Assembly: GCA_004431415.1 (NCBI GenBank)
Contig: QPMI01000190.1
Span: 1 to 64,000 of the forward strand
Direction of reading: 5' to 3'
From: Cyanophora paradoxa CCMP329
Lineage: Eukaryota > Plantae > Glaucophyta
Length of the DNA stretch: 64,000 nucleotides
Shown: piece after piece, positions 7,022 through 62,744 of the stretch
Layout: each line of letters begins with the position of its first letter
Position numbering within the stretch: the stretch's first letter is position 1
Translations under genes and position numbers: made by a program
Notes under the pieces: generated by a model
Told to the model about the DNA's origin: nothing
The model's input: only the letters and a program-made list of their open reading frames with translations
Database searches by the model: none

Positions 7022-7659
7022 CGGACACGGCTACTGGACACGGAGCAACAGGTTCAGTCTCTAACTATTGTGGGACACGAGCTCCGCCCTCGCCCCCGTG
7101 TCCGGAGGGGGGACTGGGACACGGCCCGAGCCGATCATGAATTAGAACTCCGCAACCTCTTTCTGCTACGTGGCACGGGAGTACATGTATTAGAGGTGCA
7201 ACACTGGGTACGAGCGCACGATTTAGCCGGCAAGCTGGGCAACTAGCTGAGCTCCGGCTGTCGGCTTGCTGCAGCTGGACTTCATGATCAGCCGCGCGAA
7301 GTTCAGCGCGTGGCGTCCGTCGGCCGCGCTCGCCCGGGCCGGGCCGCTCGAGCCTCACTCCTCGCTCGTGCGCTCGCCGCGCGCGGCGCTGCCGTCGGCG
7401 CTGCCACGCTTCACGCTCCGCCGATTCCGGCCGCACCAGGTACGAACCCGTCCTCCTCCGCCGCGCCGCCCTCTCACTTCCCGCGACCGCGGCCGCGAGA
7501 CGCAGCAGCGAACGTCGCAGCTGCAGCTGGGCATCAAACTCGCATCTGTTCCATCGGTGCGCATGCTGCACAGCTGTGCTCGTCGCTCCCTCGAGCTCTG
7601 CCGCGGCCGCGGGGGGAAGGTCTGCCGCTGCGCCTAGCCTCCCGGGTCCGCCCGCGCCG

Positions 7660-11484: not shown

Positions 11485-13456
11485 ATGTTTGTGTCGACCG
11501 GGGTAGAGCGATCTCCGTCCATGTTCGCCCCAGCGCTAGCGAGCTTCCCGGCACCTCCGGCGACGCGATGGCTCATCAATCTTAGTCCACTTGCAGCGCC
11601 TGCCGCCCGGGATCAGCGCCCGCAGCCGGCCCGACGATTACGAGCTGCAGGCGGAGGTCCGGCGGGAGCACGGTTCGAAAGCAGCTATGGGTCTGCGTGC
11701 AGCCGATTCGTTGGCAGGCCCGTGCGCCCTCCAGCGGCGCCGCGTCCGGCGATCACCTCCTCGGCCGAGCTGCGCTGCGAGAGCGCATCGAGTGCGTACG
11801 CGGCGCTCAGAGCTCGTGTACGCGCACTGCGTACTCAACGCTTTGCAGCGTGGACGTTCGTGGAGCTCGAGTGCGCGGAGGGCGTGGACGTGCGCGCTCT
11901 GTGCGACCTCGTGCTCGAGTTGGGCCTCGGGGCGTCTGCGGTGGTCGTCGCCGGCGGAGAGGAGGAGATTTTCCATGAACGGGAGGTTTCCGGCAACGTG
12001 TGGACGGGAGAGGGCGTGAACGCGCCGCCGCCGCCGAAGCTCTGGGAACGGAGCGTCGTGCGCGTCATGCTCTTCCCGCCCCTCGAAGGCACGCCTCCGC
12101 GGCCTCACTCGAGCTCTCCCGCCTTGCTCTCCCGATCCCCGCCTCGGGGGCACTGGGCGGAGGCCCACGCGGGGTGCGCGCGCAGGGGCGCCGGGGGTCC
12201 CGGTGGAGGAGCAGGTGGCGAACATGCTGGAGGCCGTGCAGCTGGGGATGGGCCTCGCCGCCCCGCCCCCGCACCGCGTCGTCGAGGAGCCCGCCATCGA
12301 CTGGGCCCGCCCCGCCCCGCCCGCCCCTCCCCTCCACTCGCCCGGGGCCCAGCGATCGCGAGGCTGATGGGGGCGGCGGGCGCGGGCAGGTGACGGCGGT
12401 GGCGCGGGCGACGTTCGAGCCGATCTGCGTGGACGGCGGCCGCCTGTGGGTCCTCCCTGAGTGGTGGGAGGGGGACGAGCCCCAGGGCGCCCAGCACGTC
12501 ATCCGCCTCGACCCCGGTACCCCCCTCCCCCCCCCCCCCCCCCCCTCTCCCCCTGGCCGACGTGTTGGGCAGGGGCGGCGTTCGGGGACGGGCAGCACCA
12601 GACGACGCGGCTCTGCCTGGAGTGGGCGGTGCGCTCGTACCCCCAGCCCTCGGATTTCTAGGAGGCCCAGGCCTCGTCCTAGGCCTCGTCTTCGAAGCCG
12701 ATTGAAGAGGGGCGGGGGCAGGTGCGGAACGTGCGGGCGGGGGACCGGGTGCTGGACTTCGGCTGCGGGACGGGCATCCTCGCGCTCGGCGCCATGCTCG
12801 CCGGCGCCCGCTCCGCCCACGGCGTCGACATCGAGCCCGAGGCGCGCCACTTTCCACCCGCCCGCCCCTGCCTCGCACTCGCCCCTTCCGACTCGAGCCG
12901 GCAGGCGCTGGAGGCGAGCCGGAGGAACGCGGCGGGGAACGGGTACGCGGATCAGGAGAACGGTCCCCTCCGCTTCTACTCGGGCCCGGCCTTCGACGAG
13001 GCGCGCGCCTCGGGCGCGGGCGCGGGGGAGAAATACGACGTCCTTCTCGGTGCCCTCGGCCCCGACGCGGGCCGAGACTCACGGAAGCTGATCTGCGCGG
13101 CGCGAAGCGAACATTCTCTTTGCTCCCCTCGTCGAGCTCGCCCCCAAGTTCGCCTCGCTCCTCCGCCCCGGCGGCCAGGCCCGCCCCGCCCCGCGCTGGC
13201 GAGCTCGCGTGGGGCGGCGGGTGAGGGCGGGGCGGGCAGATCTGCGTGTCGGGCTTCGTGGTGGCCTCGGCGGAGAAGATCAGCGAGGTGTACGCCGCAA
13301 ACGGCTTCGAGATCACCGAGGCCCGCACCCTCGACGACTGGGTCCGCGCCCCCCCCCGCGCGGCCCCCGCGCGGCCCCGGCGTGTGCGCCAGCCCACGTG
13401 CGCCTCGCGGCCGCCCGCAGGTCTGCCTCGCGGCGACCCGCCGCTCCGATGACTGA
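11485..13456 (+). CDS. prmA: Ribosomal protein L11 methyltransferase, organelle (probably plastid) targeted
   Basis: IRLDPG|[64 protein letters not shown]; long Ala/Ser/Arg-rich N-terminal extension beginning MFV/MFA. Confidence 0.9.
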
Positions 13457-13716
13457 GCCCGAGGCCCTCCCTGCCCCTCTTCGCCCCCGCTTCAAGTTCT
13501 CCTCCCGGCACACTGGTGCTGCTCCCACCGCACACCAGTGCTGCTCCCACGCCCTTGGCCCGCTGCCCGAGGCCAGCTCATGTCTCATCCATCGCTTCGC
13601 AATCGATGTCCAAGGCGAACAGAACTCGGGGTGGCCGAGCTCGGGGCCCGCAGCGCATATTTACAGGGGCGGCGCCCGCCAGCTCCGGCCGAGCGAGTGA
13701 GCTCGAGGGGCGGCAC

Positions 13717-14739
13717 TCAGGCCTTGAGCTGCGGGGCGGCGGGCTTGTCCTTGATGGCGATCTTCTGCTTCTTGGGGACGGCCTGCTGCGGCTTGGCGAC
13801 CTCGATCGTCAGGACGCCGTTGTCGTACTCCGCGTCCACCTTGTCGGGGTTCTCCCGCAGGCCGGGCTGCACGCGCGCAAAAGAGGCCGGAGGCTTCAGC
13901 GCCGCGCTTCCTGCTTGAGCTCGGCGGCCGTGTGCGCACCAGGACGAACTGGCGCATGAAGGTGCCGGCGCGGCGCTCGCGGCGGACATAGTTGCCCTCG
14001 CGCTTCTCCTCCTCCTTGCGCGTCTCCCCGCTGAGCGTGAGCGTGTCCCCGTCCACGTCGATCTTGATCTTGTCCTTGTCCACCTGTCGCGCGGCGTAAG
14101 CTGCAGGCGCCGGCGCGGCGCGGCCCGCGCGTCGACCGCGGAGCTACCCCTGCGCCCCCTCGTCGGACGCGGCTCGTGGCGCGCTGCGGGCGCTGTACGT
14201 ATACCTGGGAGTTCGGCGTGGACGATGTACTTGTTGTCAGTCTGCAAGCGGTGGGCTTGAGGAAGAGATCGAGCGCAGCTCTTGCAAATTGCAGCTGCGC
14301 ACCTCGCGGAGGTCGGCGCGCGGGTGCCAGTCCACGAGGGGTCCGACTGGCGTTGGCATGGTGAGCTCGCGGTTGAAGTCCGAGAAACCTGCGCGCGCGC
14401 ACGCGCGCGCGCGTAAGCGAAGTCGACGTCGACGCGTTGAGCTCGAGAGGCGCTTACCGGGAAGTCCCAGGGCGCGATTCTGGTTGAGGACGCCGCTGAC
14501 TCGATTCCAAAGATCGTTGATGCCGCGGCGCCTGCGAAGTCGAGCCATCAAATTCTTCGAAGTTTCGAATTTAACTTCGATGCTTTGAGGGCGCGCGTGT
14601 CGGCGCGAGGGGAGAGCGGGTGGCGGAGCGAACGAATGCGATATGCGACGCGCGCGGACGACAATTGCAATTACGTAAACGACGGACGACAGTTCGAAGG
14701 GCGCGCACGGATCGCTGATGTCGCCACCGAGGACATCAT
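13717..14739 (-). CDS. Small heat-shock protein (Hsp20/alpha-crystallin), probably mitochondrial
   Basis: WHPRADLRE|TDNKYIVHAELPG|VDKDKIKIDVDGDTLTLSGE..RRERRAGTFMRQFVLP..KVDAEYDNGVLTIEVAK; predicted exon 1 MMSSVATSAIRARPSNCRPSFT|RRG looks like a presequence (alternative ATG at 14548). Confidence 0.9.
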
Positions 14740-15048
14740 CAAACACGCGATCGACATCCCTCTGAATCCTGGATTCGAAGGTGATCCGAAGTCAGTTCGA
14801 ATTCCGGCCAAACGGGACAATAATCGGGCGTACGCACATCGCGAACGGGTCGCGCGAATACTGCTGCATGGCCATGGTGCGATCGGCGAGGATCGAAGCT
14901 GGATCACCGGTACCTCAGCTGGTTTTAGGGGGGGGGGGGTCGGGAGGGGTGCAGCATTTCCAACCCTTCGACCTGCAGAACCGCCCAGCGACGCAACGGG
15001 CAGCCAAGAGCGCAGAGATTTAGACTCAGCACCCGCTGCTTGAGGGTC

Positions 15049-17939: not shown

Positions 17940-19710
17940 TCAGGCGTCCTTCTTGGTCTCGCCGCCGGCGGCCATGCGGGCCTTCTTGCGGAGGGCCAGG
18001 CCGCTGCGCCGGGAGGGGGCGTCAGGCAGACGGGGCGGGCGGCGGGACGGGGTGGAGCGGGCGGGTTCACAAGGAGGTGAGGTGGCTCAGGGGGCGGCGG
18101 AGGCGAGCATGGGCGCGGTCGCCGACTCGGAGGCGAGGCGGGCCTTGCGCTTAAGGGCGAGCCCCCTATCGGACGGGCTGGTCTGCTGGGGCGGCGCGGG
18201 GCGCGGGGCCGGCGCACCGGAGCTTCTTGTGCAGGCCGAGCACGTGCCAGTCGAGGAGGAACTTGGGCACGGAGCCCGTGACGCCGCTGCGCGCGGCCCG
18301 TCAGCGCGGCCCCCTGGAAGGCGTCAGCCAAGGCGGGGGCGGGCGGGGCGGACTCCATGAGGGCGTGGGCCCAGTAGGGGTTGAACTCGATGGCGTAGCC
18401 GAGCTTGTTGAGGGTGCCGGCAGCGACGGCGGCCGGCTGGGGCACGGTCAGCGACGCCCGCTTGATCTTCGACATCGCCGACACGACGTAGTACGGCTTG
18501 ATGTACACGCAGTCCACCTCGCCCTTGTACCTGCGCGGCGCCGTCAGCGAAGGGCAGCCCCGGCCGTGCGGAGGGCGGGGTGAGAGGGGGGGGGGGGGGG
18601 GAGGGGGGGTAGGGGGGGGCGGACTCGGCGGCGAGGGCCTCGGTCATGGTGCGGAGGTAGGCCTTGGAGCCGGCGTACGAGGCGAGCAGCGGGGCGCCCA
18701 CCGTGGCGGAGCCGGAGCCGACGTTCACGATCAGGCCCTTGAAGTTCCTGGCCCCGCCCCCGCCCCCGTCGGCGGTGGCGTGTTGGGCGGCGGCGCTGGG
18801 TGCGGGGGCGCGGGCGGACGACTTGCGGATGATGGGGAGGCAGCGGCGGGTCATCTCGGTGGCGGCGAAGACGTTGAGGTTGACCACGTTGCTGATCGTG
18901 TCCCGCGGCACCTCGTGCAGGAACATGTGGTGCTCGTAGTTCGTCCCCGCGTTGTTCACTGCCCCGCCCCCCCGTCGGACCACGCGCACCGGGCGCCAGC
19001 GCCGCGCCGCGGAGCGCGGGCCGGCGCACCGAGGCAGGTGATGCCGAGCTTCTCAATCTCGGGCTGGACGCGGTTCTCCCACAGCGAGTTGTCCGGGTTG
19101 CACAGGTCCGCCGCAAGGACCTTGACCTGCACCTTGTACTTCTTCTCTGCGGCGCCGCTCGCACCGGGCGCGCGCAAGGCGCGAGTTGGAGCTAATGGCG
19201 AGCGCACCGATGTCGGCCTTGACCTCGTTCAGGCGCGACTCCGTGCGCGAAATGATCAGAAGGTTGAAGCCCTTCTTGGCGAGCTGGCTCGCGAAGGCCT
19301 TGCCGATGCCGTCCGAAGCGCCAGTCACGACTGGGCGGTGGTCGGTCGCAGGTGGCGGTGCGGCGGCAGGGATCAACGCCCGCACCGGCCCATGCGCCCT
19401 TGCGCGCGCCGTACTTGCCGAGGCCGCTCAGGAAGCTCGGGCGGAAGCACTGGAGCCAGAAGAAGGAAAGAATCGAGAGGGCAAACTTGCCGACGACAAT
19501 GCCGCCAACGATGGCGAAGGCCTTCGTGGCGTTCTGCGCAGCGGCGGAGGGCGTGCGGTTAGCGCGCGTTGGAGGTCCAATCAGGCGCCAAACTGCCGGC
19601 ACGGCGAGGGCGCGCACGAAGTCGGTGAACCAGTTGACCACCTCGCGTTGAACATCCTCCGGGCGAACAGACAGCAGCTGGCGCTTAGCCGACGCCACGA
19701 ACGCCTCCAT
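17940..19710 (-). CDS. SDR, very-long-chain 3-oxoacyl-CoA reductase (KCR/17beta-HSD12-like)
   Basis: N-terminal transmembrane segment; [48 protein letters not shown]; C-terminal KKDA* ER-retrieval signal. Confidence 0.9.
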
Positions 19711-19878: not shown

Positions 19879-22800
19879 ATGGCGGCAGTAGCCACCGCGT
19901 CTCTGCCGTCCGTATCTCTAGCAGAGAGCGTGCAGAGCGCGTTGGGACACGCTATGGCGCCAGCACCGCCGCCCCCGCCACCCAAGCCCGGCGCGACAAT
20001 GCACGGCACGCAGACAGGCAGCCCCGGGCAGAGTCAGTCCTTTAAAGGCGTGGACTTCGCGAAGATCCTGGACATCTTCACAAACAAGCACTCGGCGGAG
20101 CTGCACGACCGGCAGGTGGCAGCGCTGGAGAAGATCTGGAGGCGGTGCCAGTCCGGAATCATATCCTTGAGCCTAGCTACGAAGCCTCTGTGCCGCCTCG
20201 CGCCCCCGCTGCTGGCCCTGACCCGCGCGCACGTCGTAAAGGACCTGCCGCAGCTTCAGGAGGTCATGCGGCTCTCGGCGGCGCGCATCTCGGCGGGGCA
20301 CGCGCAGTTCGTGGAGCCATTCTGCAGGATACTCCTCCTCTGCGCCGTGCCCTTCGTCAAGGAGTTCGCGCACGAGGAGCTGACGGGCGTCGAGGACGTC
20401 TGCTCGACGATAGCCACTGTCGGGCGCATGCTCTCGTGCCCCGAGCCGCAGGTCCAGATGCAGGCAGCCAACGTGCGCGCCCCGCCCCGCCCCGCCCCGC
20501 CCCGCCCCGCCCGGCGGCGGCCCCAGCGGCGGCCCTGGCGGGCCCGCGGCCCCCGCGCGCCGGCCGGGGCTGACGAGGGCGGGGCGCGGGGCGCAGACGC
20601 TGATCGCGGTGGCGTCGCTGATGCGGCGGAAGCCGACGGTGGAGACGGACGGGGAGCTGGTGCGGCAGGCGCTGCTCGTGACGCCGCGCATGGTCCTGGA
20701 GAGCGGCGTCGTGGAGGCCGTCGTCGCCGCGCTGCGGGCCGAGCAGCACGCTGGCGTCCAGCTCGCCATCGTCCGCTGCCTCCGCGAGTTCTCCTACGCC
20801 GACGACCTCTGCCCCCAGATCACCCAGGGCGCGCCCCCGCTGCCCCCGCCCCCCCTCCCCTCCCTGCCGGGGCGGGCGGGGGTGCTGAGGGGACTGGGCG
20901 GGGGTAGCGGGGGCGCTGGAGCTGGTGGTGAACTTCCTGCAGCTGGACTTCGAGCACGAGGGCATCCCCGTCGTCGTCGAGCTGCTCTGGAACGTCCTCG
21001 AGTCCGACCCGGAGTCCCGCGCCGTCCTCGGCTCCTGGCACGCCGTCAACACCCTCAAGGAGCTCGCCGCCCGCGTCTTCTGCGACGGCTACCGCACCAA
21101 GCACAAGGAGCTCCGCAACGAGCTCCTCATCGTGCGGCCCCCCCCTCCCCCTCCCCCGCGCGCGTCCGGGCGGGAGCGACGGCGGCGTGATGCCGGCGGC
21201 CTGCAGATCGCGACGCTGCTGGCGTACCACGGGGAGAACCGGAAGTACTTCCTCGAGACGGGCTTCCTCGAGCTCCTCCTCGTCTTCTCCACGGCCGCCG
21301 AGCTCGAGCTGCGGCACGAGGCCGTCCGCCCGCACTTCCTCGCGACGGGCGCGGCGGAGCTGGAGACGCGGAAGTGGATGTGGGGCCTGCTCTCGATGCT
21401 GAGCACGCACGGGGCGTCGCTGGAGGGGATCGTGCGGGGCGAGCTCCTCCGCGTCCTCCTCCTCTACCTCGAGGGCCCCGAGGCGCAGGCCGCGAGCGCC
21501 CTCCCCAAGTGGACCCCCGCCCAGCTCCGCGACCTCCAGGCCACCGCCCTCTCCGTCCTCTTCGCCCTCGTGCCCCTCTGCGGGGAGGAGTTCCAGCGCC
21601 TCGGGGGCCCCCGCCTGCTCCTCGCCTTCCTCGCCGCCCAGGCCCGCCCCGACGGCGACGCCCGCCTCCGGCAGCGCGCCCTCGCCCTCCTCGTCAACGT
21701 CGCGCCGCTGCCGGGCTTCGGGCTGGAGCTGGGGCGGCTGGGGGCGCTGCCCCTCATGCTGGGGCTGGCGGGGGACCCCTCGCAGGCCTACGTCGCCCGC
21801 CAGGACGCCGTCTCCGTGGTCGCCCTGCTCTGCGACGGCTGCGACGAGAACAAGTACGCGCTCGGCAAGGAGGGCGGCGTCCCCCTCCTCTCCTCCCACC
21901 TCCGCTGGGGGCCCGGCGAGGGCGGCCAGCGGGAGCAGCTCGTCACCGCCGTCGTCGACTGCGTGTGGCGCGCCGTCGTCGGGCACCCGCGCAACGAGGC
22001 CCGCTTCCTCAACGCCAACGGCGCGCCCCCGCCCGCCCTCGCTCGCTCGCTGGCTGGCGGGGCGGGGGTCTGAGGGGGCGGGACAGGGCTGGCGGCGCTG
22101 CTGGACCTGCTGGACGACTGCCCGGAGCTGATGCGCTTCCAGGTGATGGGCTGCCTCGCCGACCTCCTCGAGAACCCCGAGGCCCGCGACCTCTTCTTCC
22201 ACTGGCGCTCCCGCCGCTCCGCCCGCACCGCCGTCCGCCTGCTCCTCGCCTTCTGGGAGGAGGAGGAGGCCAAGTTCGGCATCGCCGACGACCGCGGCCT
22301 CCTCGCCAACAGCGAGGCGCCCCTCGAGGGCACCCGCGTCCCCCTCGAGGTCCCCGGCGGCACCGGCGCCGCCCTCCCCTCCGCCACCCTCCGCTCCCTC
22401 GCCCGCGCCCCCTCCGGCGCCTCCCTCCGCTCCTCCGCCCCCGCCCCCGCCCCCGCCCCCGCCCTCGGCGCCGCGGCGGCGGCGGGGCCCTCGGGCTACG
22501 CGGGCGGCGACGCGGGGGCTGCTGCGGGGGGCGGGAGCGGGTCGGCGTCGGCGCGGAGCGGGGCGGGGAGCGACAGCGTGGAGCGGCTGTACAGCCAGGA
22601 CATCAAGACGAAGATCTACTGCATCTTCCGGCGGGTCGGCTTCGAGCGGACGGAGGGCCTGGAGGCGCGGCAGCGGATGACGCTCGCCCTCGTGGAGCGC
22701 TACCTCGAGTTCCGGGAGGGGGAGGTCTGGCGCGAGATCCGCGCCGAGCTCGACGCCGAGGGGACGCGCCCCGTCTCCCCCGACGCCGCCCGCCTCGAGG

Positions 22801-57000: not shown

Positions 57001-57923
57001 GACGTCCAGGTCCCGCGGTCCGGGGCGCCCGCCCGCGGGTGGGCCTGCACCCGCCAGCCCGCTCGCAGATCGCGGGGACGCAGCGCCGGCAGTGCTCGCG
57101 GGTGGGGAGGGGAGAGGGGCGTCGGACTTCCGGGGGCTGGAGAGGCGCGGAACAGAGGGCGCGTGGGGTCGCAGGGGGTCGAATGGGGAGGGGGCTGGCG
57201 CGGGAGGGGCCCGCCAAGATGGCGACGAGGAGGAGGCGGGAGACGGCGGCGGACGGGCAGAGGGAGAGAGGCCGCTCCGCGACCCGGGAGGGGAAGCGAC
57301 GGGCGATGGCGTGGCTACGCGGGCGGCGGCCGGTTGGGGGGTGAGCACCCGGCCGCTGGAGCTGCCCGGCGGGGACGGGCCAGAGGTACTTGGGCGGCCA
57401 TCGTGCGAGGAGGAGGGTGATTGCGGGTGCCGCGCGTCGGGCGCGGAGACGCGTGCGGCTCCGGCGGAGGAGGACTGGAAGGGGTTGAGCGCTTGTGCGG
57501 AGGAGGCAGCGCCCGACGACGAAGGCGGGTGCAGAGGCGGAGTTGGTGCGCGAGCAATCTCCACGATGGAGGGAAGTGGTCCAGCGTCAGCGGCTCCGCT
57601 CCTTCGAGCGGCGGCTGGTTCGTCGGGAGAAGCTGACGCGGCGCGCTGCTTCGCTCGCTTCTGCCTGTACTCCTCAAGCTGCGCGGAATGTGGTGATTAA
57701 GGATCCGATGCGCCCGCTTCAAAGCTAGCCGCCCCAGGACGCGCCGGCGTGGACTCAGACATCGGGTCGGCCAAGGAAATAGCTCTAAATCATGCGGCGC
57801 GATGCGGGACCCTAAAGGACACGCTTATCGGGCGCGTACCTTCCGCCGCCCGACGCTCAGCAGCTCGGCCTTCTTCTCCGGAGTTCGCGCGACGCCCGCC
57901 CGGGCGGGAGAGCGACCGAGCAT
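54018..57923 (-). CDS. Long coiled-coil protein with a GM130/pericentrin/BLISTER-type N-terminal motif
   Basis: MLGRSP..KKAELLSVGRRK|LEEYRQKRAK, a Ser/Pro-rich linker, then extended heptad repeats. Confidence 0.65.
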
Positions 57924-62150: not shown

Positions 62151-62744
62151 CACCCTCCTCAGCCTGCCCTCTTCGGACCCCGCTCTCTTTGAGCCTGCCC
62201 TCTTCGGACCCCGCTCTGCCAGCCCTCTTTGAACTTGCGCCCTCTCTTTTAGCCTGACCTTCTCTTTGCTCGTTCGCTCTCCAAAGTCCCTTTCCCTTCT
62301 CCTCACAGCACAGGCCCCGGGGTCTCCAGTTTTGTATGCAGCGCAGCATATTTACGTTTGGGTTTAGGAACAGACATGCAGCGGTCAGGGTTCATACCGG
62401 ACCTATAGATAATGCTTCTCATATTTGCTTTCTGTACCATATGCGTCGTGGGCCTCCGTTGTCGCGGGCGCCTTGCAATTGATGTCGATTTCGGATTCAC
62501 ATGAACTGCCGGAGGACCGCATTGTGCTTCGTGGCACTCCTCCTCAGGGGCTCAAGGGCCTAGGCCCGAGGCACTGCAACGGCGTGGGGCCCCGGGGCGC
62601 CGGCGTGCACGTGGACGTTGCGAGTTGGGGCGAGGTCCAACTACAGGCGAGCTCGAGAGTGATCAGAAAGGCTCGCCCCCGTGGGGTCCTACCGGGCTAT
62701 GGGGAATTAAATAATGTGTGAATTAGCGGCTACGCCGTGACGGG

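Follow-up and report, generated by a model that had tools for sequence, protein, structure and literature searches.

Within the window, that is, the whole stretch of 64,000 nucleotides of Cyanophora paradoxa DNA analysed here, the minus strand between positions 14548 and 13717 carries what is best explained as a gene of six exons that encodes a small heat-shock protein (sHSP) with an alpha-crystallin domain. Its exons and introns, including those that are proposed, are arranged as follows.

14458..14548, minus strand: exon 1, with the ATG at 14548-14546 and a phase-1 end (...CTT CCC G); its N-terminus is the same as that of the public model P0001
14389..14457, minus strand: intron A, 69 nt, GTAAGC...GCGCAG, with GCTTAC 25 nt before the acceptor; implied by P0001
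14303..14388, minus strand: exon 2, ..FSDFNRELTMPTPVGPLVDWHPRADLRE, whose W-P-R-x-D-x-x-E pattern aligns with relatives
14242..14302, minus strand: intron B, 61 nt, GTGCGC...TTGCAG; a contig of RNA run X1 enters it for 8 nt and then stops
14205..14241, minus strand: exon 3, TDNKYIVHAELP plus the first G of a Gly codon, aligning with ...Y-V-V-H-A-E-L-P-G of the relatives
14150..14204, minus strand: proposed intron 1, 55 nt, donor GTATAC, TCCGAC 13 nt before the acceptor, G-rich tail, GCGCAG
14148..14149, minus strand: proposed 2-nt exon GG, which would complete G|GG, the Gly of ELPG
14084..14147, minus strand: proposed intron 2, 64 nt, donor GTAGCT, GCTTAC 13 nt before the acceptor, GCGACAG
14101..14106, minus strand: rival acceptor CTGCAG, at which the 104-nt intron of P0001 (14101-14204) ends
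13940..14083, minus strand: exon 5, VDKDKIKIDVDGDTLTLSGETRKEEEKREGNYVRRERRAGTFMRQFVL, matching Pfam HSP20 profile positions 18-63 (E 1e-7)
13867..13939, minus strand: last intron, 73 nt, GTGCGC...GTGCAG, whose splicing is shown by RNA contigs
13717..13866, minus strand: last exon, PGLRENPDKVDAEYDNGVLTIEVAKP...LKA, with the stop TGA at 13719-13717, matching Pfam HSP20 profile positions 68-102

The gene is represented in EukProt by the BRAKER1/Augustus model tig00000821_g4465.t1 (P0001, 174 aa), which was reached by a word search with exon 5 only and is 100% identical to that exon; an exact look-up found no exact copy of P0001 in assemblies. P0001 matches the Pfam HSP20 profile (PF00011) over positions 2-101 with 71.3 bits (cut-off 20.8; 7.7e-20), and exon 5 (32.5 bits) and the last exon (28 bits) are each above the cut-off when taken singly. 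The last exon contains NGVLTIE and ends in ...NGVLTIEVAKP...LKA*. Of the L-P-G turn that precedes strand beta-4 in this family the L-P is present, and its Gly hinges on the splice route taken between exon 3 and exon 5.

These two exons are separated by a block of 121 nt. On the minus strand exon 3 ends at 14205 with ...GAA CTC CCA G and exon 5 begins at 14083 with GTG GAC AAG; the flanks translate to TDNKYIVHAELP and to VDKDKIKIDVDG... / VDKDKIKIDVDGDTL..., and both match Pfam HSP20. The layout described in the original prediction is borne out in every detail, with GT at 14204-14203, AG at 14151-14150, GG at 14149-14148, GT at 14147-14146 and AG at 14085-14084. A direct join of the outer sites had been said to cause a frameshift, and this is so, because joining 14205 to 14083 takes out 121 nt, and only a length of 2 mod 3 keeps the frame. 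By keeping the GG that lies between the inner AG and the following GT, both the frame and the conserved residue are restored; an AG followed after 1-3 nt by a GT is thus present at the place where frame and homology call for it. The other in-frame route named at the outset, via an acceptor near 14101, was reproduced as well: it gives ELP-AYAARQ-VD without the conserved Gly, and it is the route that P0001 takes, joining the donor at 14204 to the CTGCAG acceptor at 14101 (HAELP-AYAARQ-VDK; sequence around the joint HAELPAYAARQVDK, longer context ...HAELPAYAARQVDKDK...). The expectation that gene predictors would miss a 2-nt exon therefore describes what the public model does.

Comparison with related proteins points to the Gly. 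All 24 nearest relatives that were reached by word search (24/24) read PG and then run straight into the next strand, whereas AYAARQ of P0001 replaces the Gly and fills five alignment columns that are gapped in every other sequence. The same five-residue gap lies opposite AYAARQ in the closest sHSPs of solved structure (5J7N, 3GT6/3GLA), with wheat Hsp16.9 further down the list, and exon 5 begins at HSP20 profile position 18, directly after the l-P-G positions. With bacterial-type sHSPs (Xanthomonas HspA, 3GLA and 3GT6; 5J7N) and wheat Hsp16.9 (1GME) the Cyanophora gene shares an alpha-crystallin domain that aligns over about 100 residues, including W-P-R-V-D, L-P-G (its Gly subject to the splice route), RRERR and GVL. 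It differs from them in that identity is just about 30-40% and in being split by five introns, and the public Cyanophora model additionally has L-P-AYAARQ where the L-P-G turn belongs.

The relatives from the word search are 29-42% identical and prokaryote-like; no other glaucophyte sequence or close orthologue was among them, and a scan of metagenome contigs did not find an orthologue either. Likewise, the protein word search and the metagenome contigs yielded no orthologue with a comparable intron structure. Thus, the nearest relatives of a gene with five introns (13717-14548) are prokaryote-type sHSPs, with no eukaryotic orthologue reached by either search, and the gene may be an old bacterial acquisition whose introns were gained later.

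Splice routes across the block were enumerated as sets of GT-AG introns of at least 30 nt that lead in frame and without a stop from CCA to GTG. Nine such routes exist. Just one of them, 14204-14150 plus GG plus 14147-14084, adds no more than one residue, which is Gly. The remaining eight insert GIR, GGAG, AYAARQ, GIPYAARQ or 18-25 residues. If GC donors are allowed, insertions such as GG, GV and GIRT are added, by way of donors with the lowest scores. ELPGVDK would also result from a single AT-AG intron of 119 nt (CCA GGT|AT...AG|GTG), with non-canonical ends. Without recourse to homology, a crude model that sums donor, acceptor, length and codon terms places the GG route first (-1.5 nats), ahead of the annotated route (-3.9) and the GIR route (-4.4), which favours it about 10-fold over the annotation. 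The routes can be told apart by their products: the GG route predicts the junction CCAG-GG-GTGGAC and the tryptic peptide YIVHAELPGVDK; the annotated route predicts CCAG-CTTACGCC, the tryptic peptide YIVHAELPAYAAR and the transcript CCAGCTTACGCC instead of CCAGGGGTGGAC; the AT-AG intron and the GIR route predict CCAGGT-GTGGAC and CCAGGTATAC-GG-GTGGAC, respectively.

How well the individual sites conform to the habits of this genome was judged from introns that a rough, self-trained ab initio parser, not RNA, had harvested from both strands of the window, so that all percentiles are approximate. The parser drifted, over-called GC donors and mis-parsed the Hsp20 gene itself (e.g. with a donor at 14223), and it was used for the intron harvest only. 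Seventy-three introns with a consensus donor (GT[GCA]CG[CGT]) and a CAG end were kept. Their median length is 69 nt (5-95% range 50-96 nt); the two introns of 55 and 64 nt, which had been called typical in length, are indeed central in this distribution, whereas 104 nt falls in its tail. Introns of the window share an unusual build, with a GT[GC]CG[CG] donor (C at +4), a C-rich first half, a tail that is G-rich rather than pyrimidine-rich, and GCAG at the end. A branch-like motif, GCTGA[CG], occurs 12-23 nt from the intron end and is enriched near the 3' end (25 vs 0 occurrences). In the two proposed introns the branch-like TCCGAC and GCTTAC are each located 13 nt upstream of the acceptor, and both introns thus have a size and 3' signals that are workable for this organism. 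As read from the sequence, the heptamer context of GCTTAC in proposed intron 2 recurs in intron A.

The strongest single signal is the acceptor at 14150 (GTCCGACGAGGGGGCGCAG|GG, with TCCGAC, a G-run and GCAG|G). With the two Hsp20 introns excluded from acceptor training, it reached the 97th percentile of 71 window acceptors. Among the 2,457 CAGs of the entire window it was at the 98th percentile, and each of the 69 decoy AGs inside the training introns scored lower. The acceptors at 14101 and 14084 are average (48th and 39th percentiles). By a post hoc figure, AG-NN-GT would be expected 0.10 times in the approximately 42 admissible positions, and 0.003 times with an acceptor this strong. The two donors are weak. 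GTATAC, which the GG route and the annotated route have in common, lies at the 5th percentile; its T at +4 recurs in one window donor of 103 and in none of another set of 29. GTAGCT lies at the 13th percentile of this roughly derived donor set. Both are above the donor of intron A (GTAAGC, 2nd percentile); that of the last intron, the only one seen spliced, is the strongest of the gene (75th percentile). The block has no stabilising RNA fold and is less stable than shuffled sequences (z +2.3), which argues against a hairpin bridging it. An origin from introners or repeats was also considered and dropped, as neither intron is similar to anything else within the window. The unreliable parser further proposed exons of 5-15 nt at 7509-7513, 19352-19357, 19936-19940, 57010-57017, 62210-62215 and other places.

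Eleven sequencing runs contain the stretch or part of it, eight of which are RNA-like with sampled-word shares that never exceed 0.49. Contigs were inspected from three RNA runs of two studies (X1, X3 and X5) and from a DNA run of 2012 (X9). The original prediction had named an assembly indel among the findings that would count against it; the X9 contig and the three RNA contigs match the window over the block without a differing letter or an indel, which speaks strongly against such an error. All three RNA contigs contain the joint 13866-13940 and hence lack the last intron, and a bin wholly inside this intron has zero depth. They represent sense transcripts, because the skipped 13867-13939 reads CT..AC on the plus strand and GT..AG on the minus strand. 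From 13940 they run unbroken to 14249 (X1), 14211 and 14199, and thus retain the 121-nt block. The 2-nt exon is partly supported: it belongs to the only all-GT-AG route to ELPG-VDK, in line with relatives that uniformly read PG, but in the transcript check that had been suggested its predicted junction is in no RNA contig, just as the annotated, the AT-donor or any other junction in the block was seen in none of the contigs of these three RNA runs. Contigs drop minority forms and hence show presence, not absence, so that a spliced minority is possible; depth is about 5 in two of the three runs, and the samples are probably unstressed cultures, whereas the gene is of the heat-shock type.

The word shares of 0.49, 0.45 and 0.43 equal the prediction for the retained form alone, and X2 and X4 share those of X1 and X3. 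This form cannot encode the protein, because the frame of exon 3 is shifted and the frame of exon 5 meets a TAG at 14146-14144. In the region of exons 1 and 2 (14250-14560) no contig of an RNA run covers these exons, though five runs cover the gene's 3' half. Contig ends between 14199 and 14249 fit an internal start, 3' bias at low depth or decay fragments alike.

Two further observations were made at the borders of the gene. At its 3' end, a more abundant transcript (approximately 12500-13631) abuts or overlaps Hsp20; the two are fused in one X1 contig of 1,675 nt, and X3 has a contig of depth 27.8 that shares 13618-13631 with another of depth 5.8. Overlapping UTRs have been reported for the C. 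paradoxa genome (PMC6704402), and the arrangement fits this. A G>A change at 13691 in the 3' UTR, present only in the X5 contig from the second study (depth 4.6), may reflect strain or allelic variation, or else an error. On the upstream side, five of the 19 TTCGAA palindromes of the window lie within 246 nt (14556-14801) just upstream of the Hsp20 ATG at 14548, and the total of 19 exceeds that of all 100 shuffles. Judged by its sequence, this cluster may be a promoter cluster resembling heat-shock elements; strict heat-shock element trimers (nGAAnnTTCnnGAAn) were not found upstream of Hsp20.

We consider a 2-nt exon GG between two short GT-AG introns the best single reading of the block, though we hold it tentatively and put it slightly below an even chance. 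It is supported by homology, by a top-tier acceptor located exactly 2 nt before a GT, by typical intron sizes and by the ranking of signals. The GIR variant contains the same GG exon, and with it included the chance that GG serves as an exon is about even. One rival explanation is that the public annotation is right, with one 104-nt GT-AG intron (14204 to 14101), a lineage-specific loop insert in ELP-AYAARQ-VDK and loss of the Gly. A single canonical intron suffices for this published model, its acceptor is of average strength with TCGAC 31 nt upstream, it comes second on signals alone, and a length of 104 nt is not extreme for the 2019 C. paradoxa assembly (67.6% GC, 9.2 introns per gene, mean intron 86 bp; PMC6704402). 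On the other hand, it requires an insert and a lost Gly for which neither the solved structures nor any of the 24 relatives has a parallel. Within its intron, a top-tier acceptor with GG|GT directly behind it would go unused, and the branch-like GCTTAC would become coding. Its junction, too, is in no RNA contig, and the authors of the genome state that Augustus models of C. paradoxa require manual curation (PMC6704402). We therefore regard the annotation as unlikely to be correct here. Of comparable, low probability, and if anything a little less unlikely, is that no productive splicing of the block takes place, the locus being a recently disabled copy or the source of a mainly 5'-truncated non-coding RNA in which GG is a relic. 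Such a locus would account for the finding that each RNA assembly holding the gene retains the block and lacks exons 1 and 2, for the exact fit of the word shares (0.43-0.49), for the out-of-frame retained form with its TAG and for the weakness of three of the five donors. It sits less well with the other exons, which keep open frames and conserved residues (W-P-R-x-D, RRERR, NGVLTIE), and the RNA evidence for it comes from samples that were probably unstressed and from contigs, at low depth in two of three runs, that lose minority forms.

Other routes through the block are improbable to a still greater degree. They comprise a donor GTACAG at 14198 combined with GG (ELPG-IR-VDK), the 119-nt AT-AG intron (ELPGVDK), a GT-AC or U12-like intron (ELPEVDK) and a GC-AG intron from 14193 to 14084 (ELPG-IRT-VDK). 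GTACAG has the usual C at +4 and lies at the 25th percentile as compared to the 5th for GTATAC, which places the GIR route third, and a minor intron would not be out of place in an organism with 77 of them (PMC10639083), the more so as GTATAC shares GTAT with the minor donor. However, these routes add residues that are absent from all relatives or require non-canonical ends, and the GC donors are among the poorest scored. A U12-type intron was examined specifically and rejected: the donor GTATACGTA matches the [AG]TATCCTT-type consensus GTATCCTTT at 6 of 9 positions with the key C at +5 missing, the best branch match to TCCTTAAC 10-15 nt from the 3' end is 4 of 8, and removal of 121 nt as a GT-AG intron still leaves a frameshift. 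That the true genome has a single in-frame intron disguised by an assembly or sequencing indel is conceivable given the high GC content and a long-read assembly, but the 2012 DNA run and three RNA runs of two later studies agree at every base of the block without gaps, and we consider this explanation extremely improbable.

For the GG exon we propose that the 55- and the 64-nt intron would be removed around the two nucleotides, which would complete the nearly invariant Gly codon and lead to ELPGVDK. Removal would be consecutive, because two spliceosomes cannot sit 2 nt apart, and either order would lead to the same product. Given donors that are off consensus, removal is probably slow or conditional, perhaps dependent on stress, and this would explain why the block is still present in the available RNA. 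Use of the GG route, the sequential order and the slow or stress-dependent splicing are what we infer from these data. In plants, introns beside microexons are more often detained and are removed consecutively (PMC8831610). It is tempting to speculate that the Cyanophora spliceosome routinely handles exons of 1-2 nt, and that abutting introns with weak donors constitute a detained-intron gate. Unstressed cells would then contain an unspliced, non-coding transcript, and only heat shock would lead to its completion to the ELPGVDK mRNA; we would give this far-reaching model a rather poor chance.

If confirmed, the GG exon would be among the shortest exons known and, as far as we found, the first of at most 2 nt outside land plants, in a lineage with very short, GC-rich introns in which intron definition should be purest. 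It would further imply that public Cyanophora models mis-join such sites, in the present case turning the Gly of L-P-G into a six-residue insert, and that annotation pipelines would require a micro-exon step. The retained block would offer a simple test case for late intron removal beside micro-exons, and for the question of whether such delay acts as regulation in a stress gene.

The original prediction further proposed a spliceosome that would work by strict intron definition and could retain exons shorter than a codon. As a principle this is not new, since 1-nt exons have been validated in plants (PMC4674806, PMC8831610). Like the candidate described here, the 1-nt exons of plant APC11 and VPS55 are sub-codon exons between ordinary spliceosomal introns that annotation misses, with a wrong protein as a consequence, and in Selaginella VPS55 intron-retention forms exist alongside (PMC4674806, PMC8831610). 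The plant exons, however, have been confirmed by RT-PCR as well as with reporter constructs, and land plants conserve them, whereas the Cyanophora candidate is 2 nt long, belongs to a glaucophyte, is flanked by very short GC-rich introns with weak donors and is predicted from the sequence.

Two other arrangements resemble the block in part. In recursive splicing with zero-length exons, as in Drosophila Ubx, very long introns are removed by way of juxtaposed AG|GT sites that leave no nucleotide in the mRNA. The block resembles this in that a donor follows an acceptor almost immediately, within a longer stretch that would be removed in steps. We nevertheless rejected a recursive splice site as an explanation: in the Cyanophora block AG and GT are separated by 2 nt that must be kept for the frame, and its introns measure about 60 nt each. 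In the spliceosomal twin introns (stwintrons) of fungi, the inner intron lies within a splice signal of the outer intron and so disrupts it. These likewise consist of two introns in immediate contact that are excised consecutively. A stwintron reading was rejected as well, as neither Cyanophora intron interrupts the splice signals of the other; both sets of signals are left intact, and excision in either order would result in the same mRNA.
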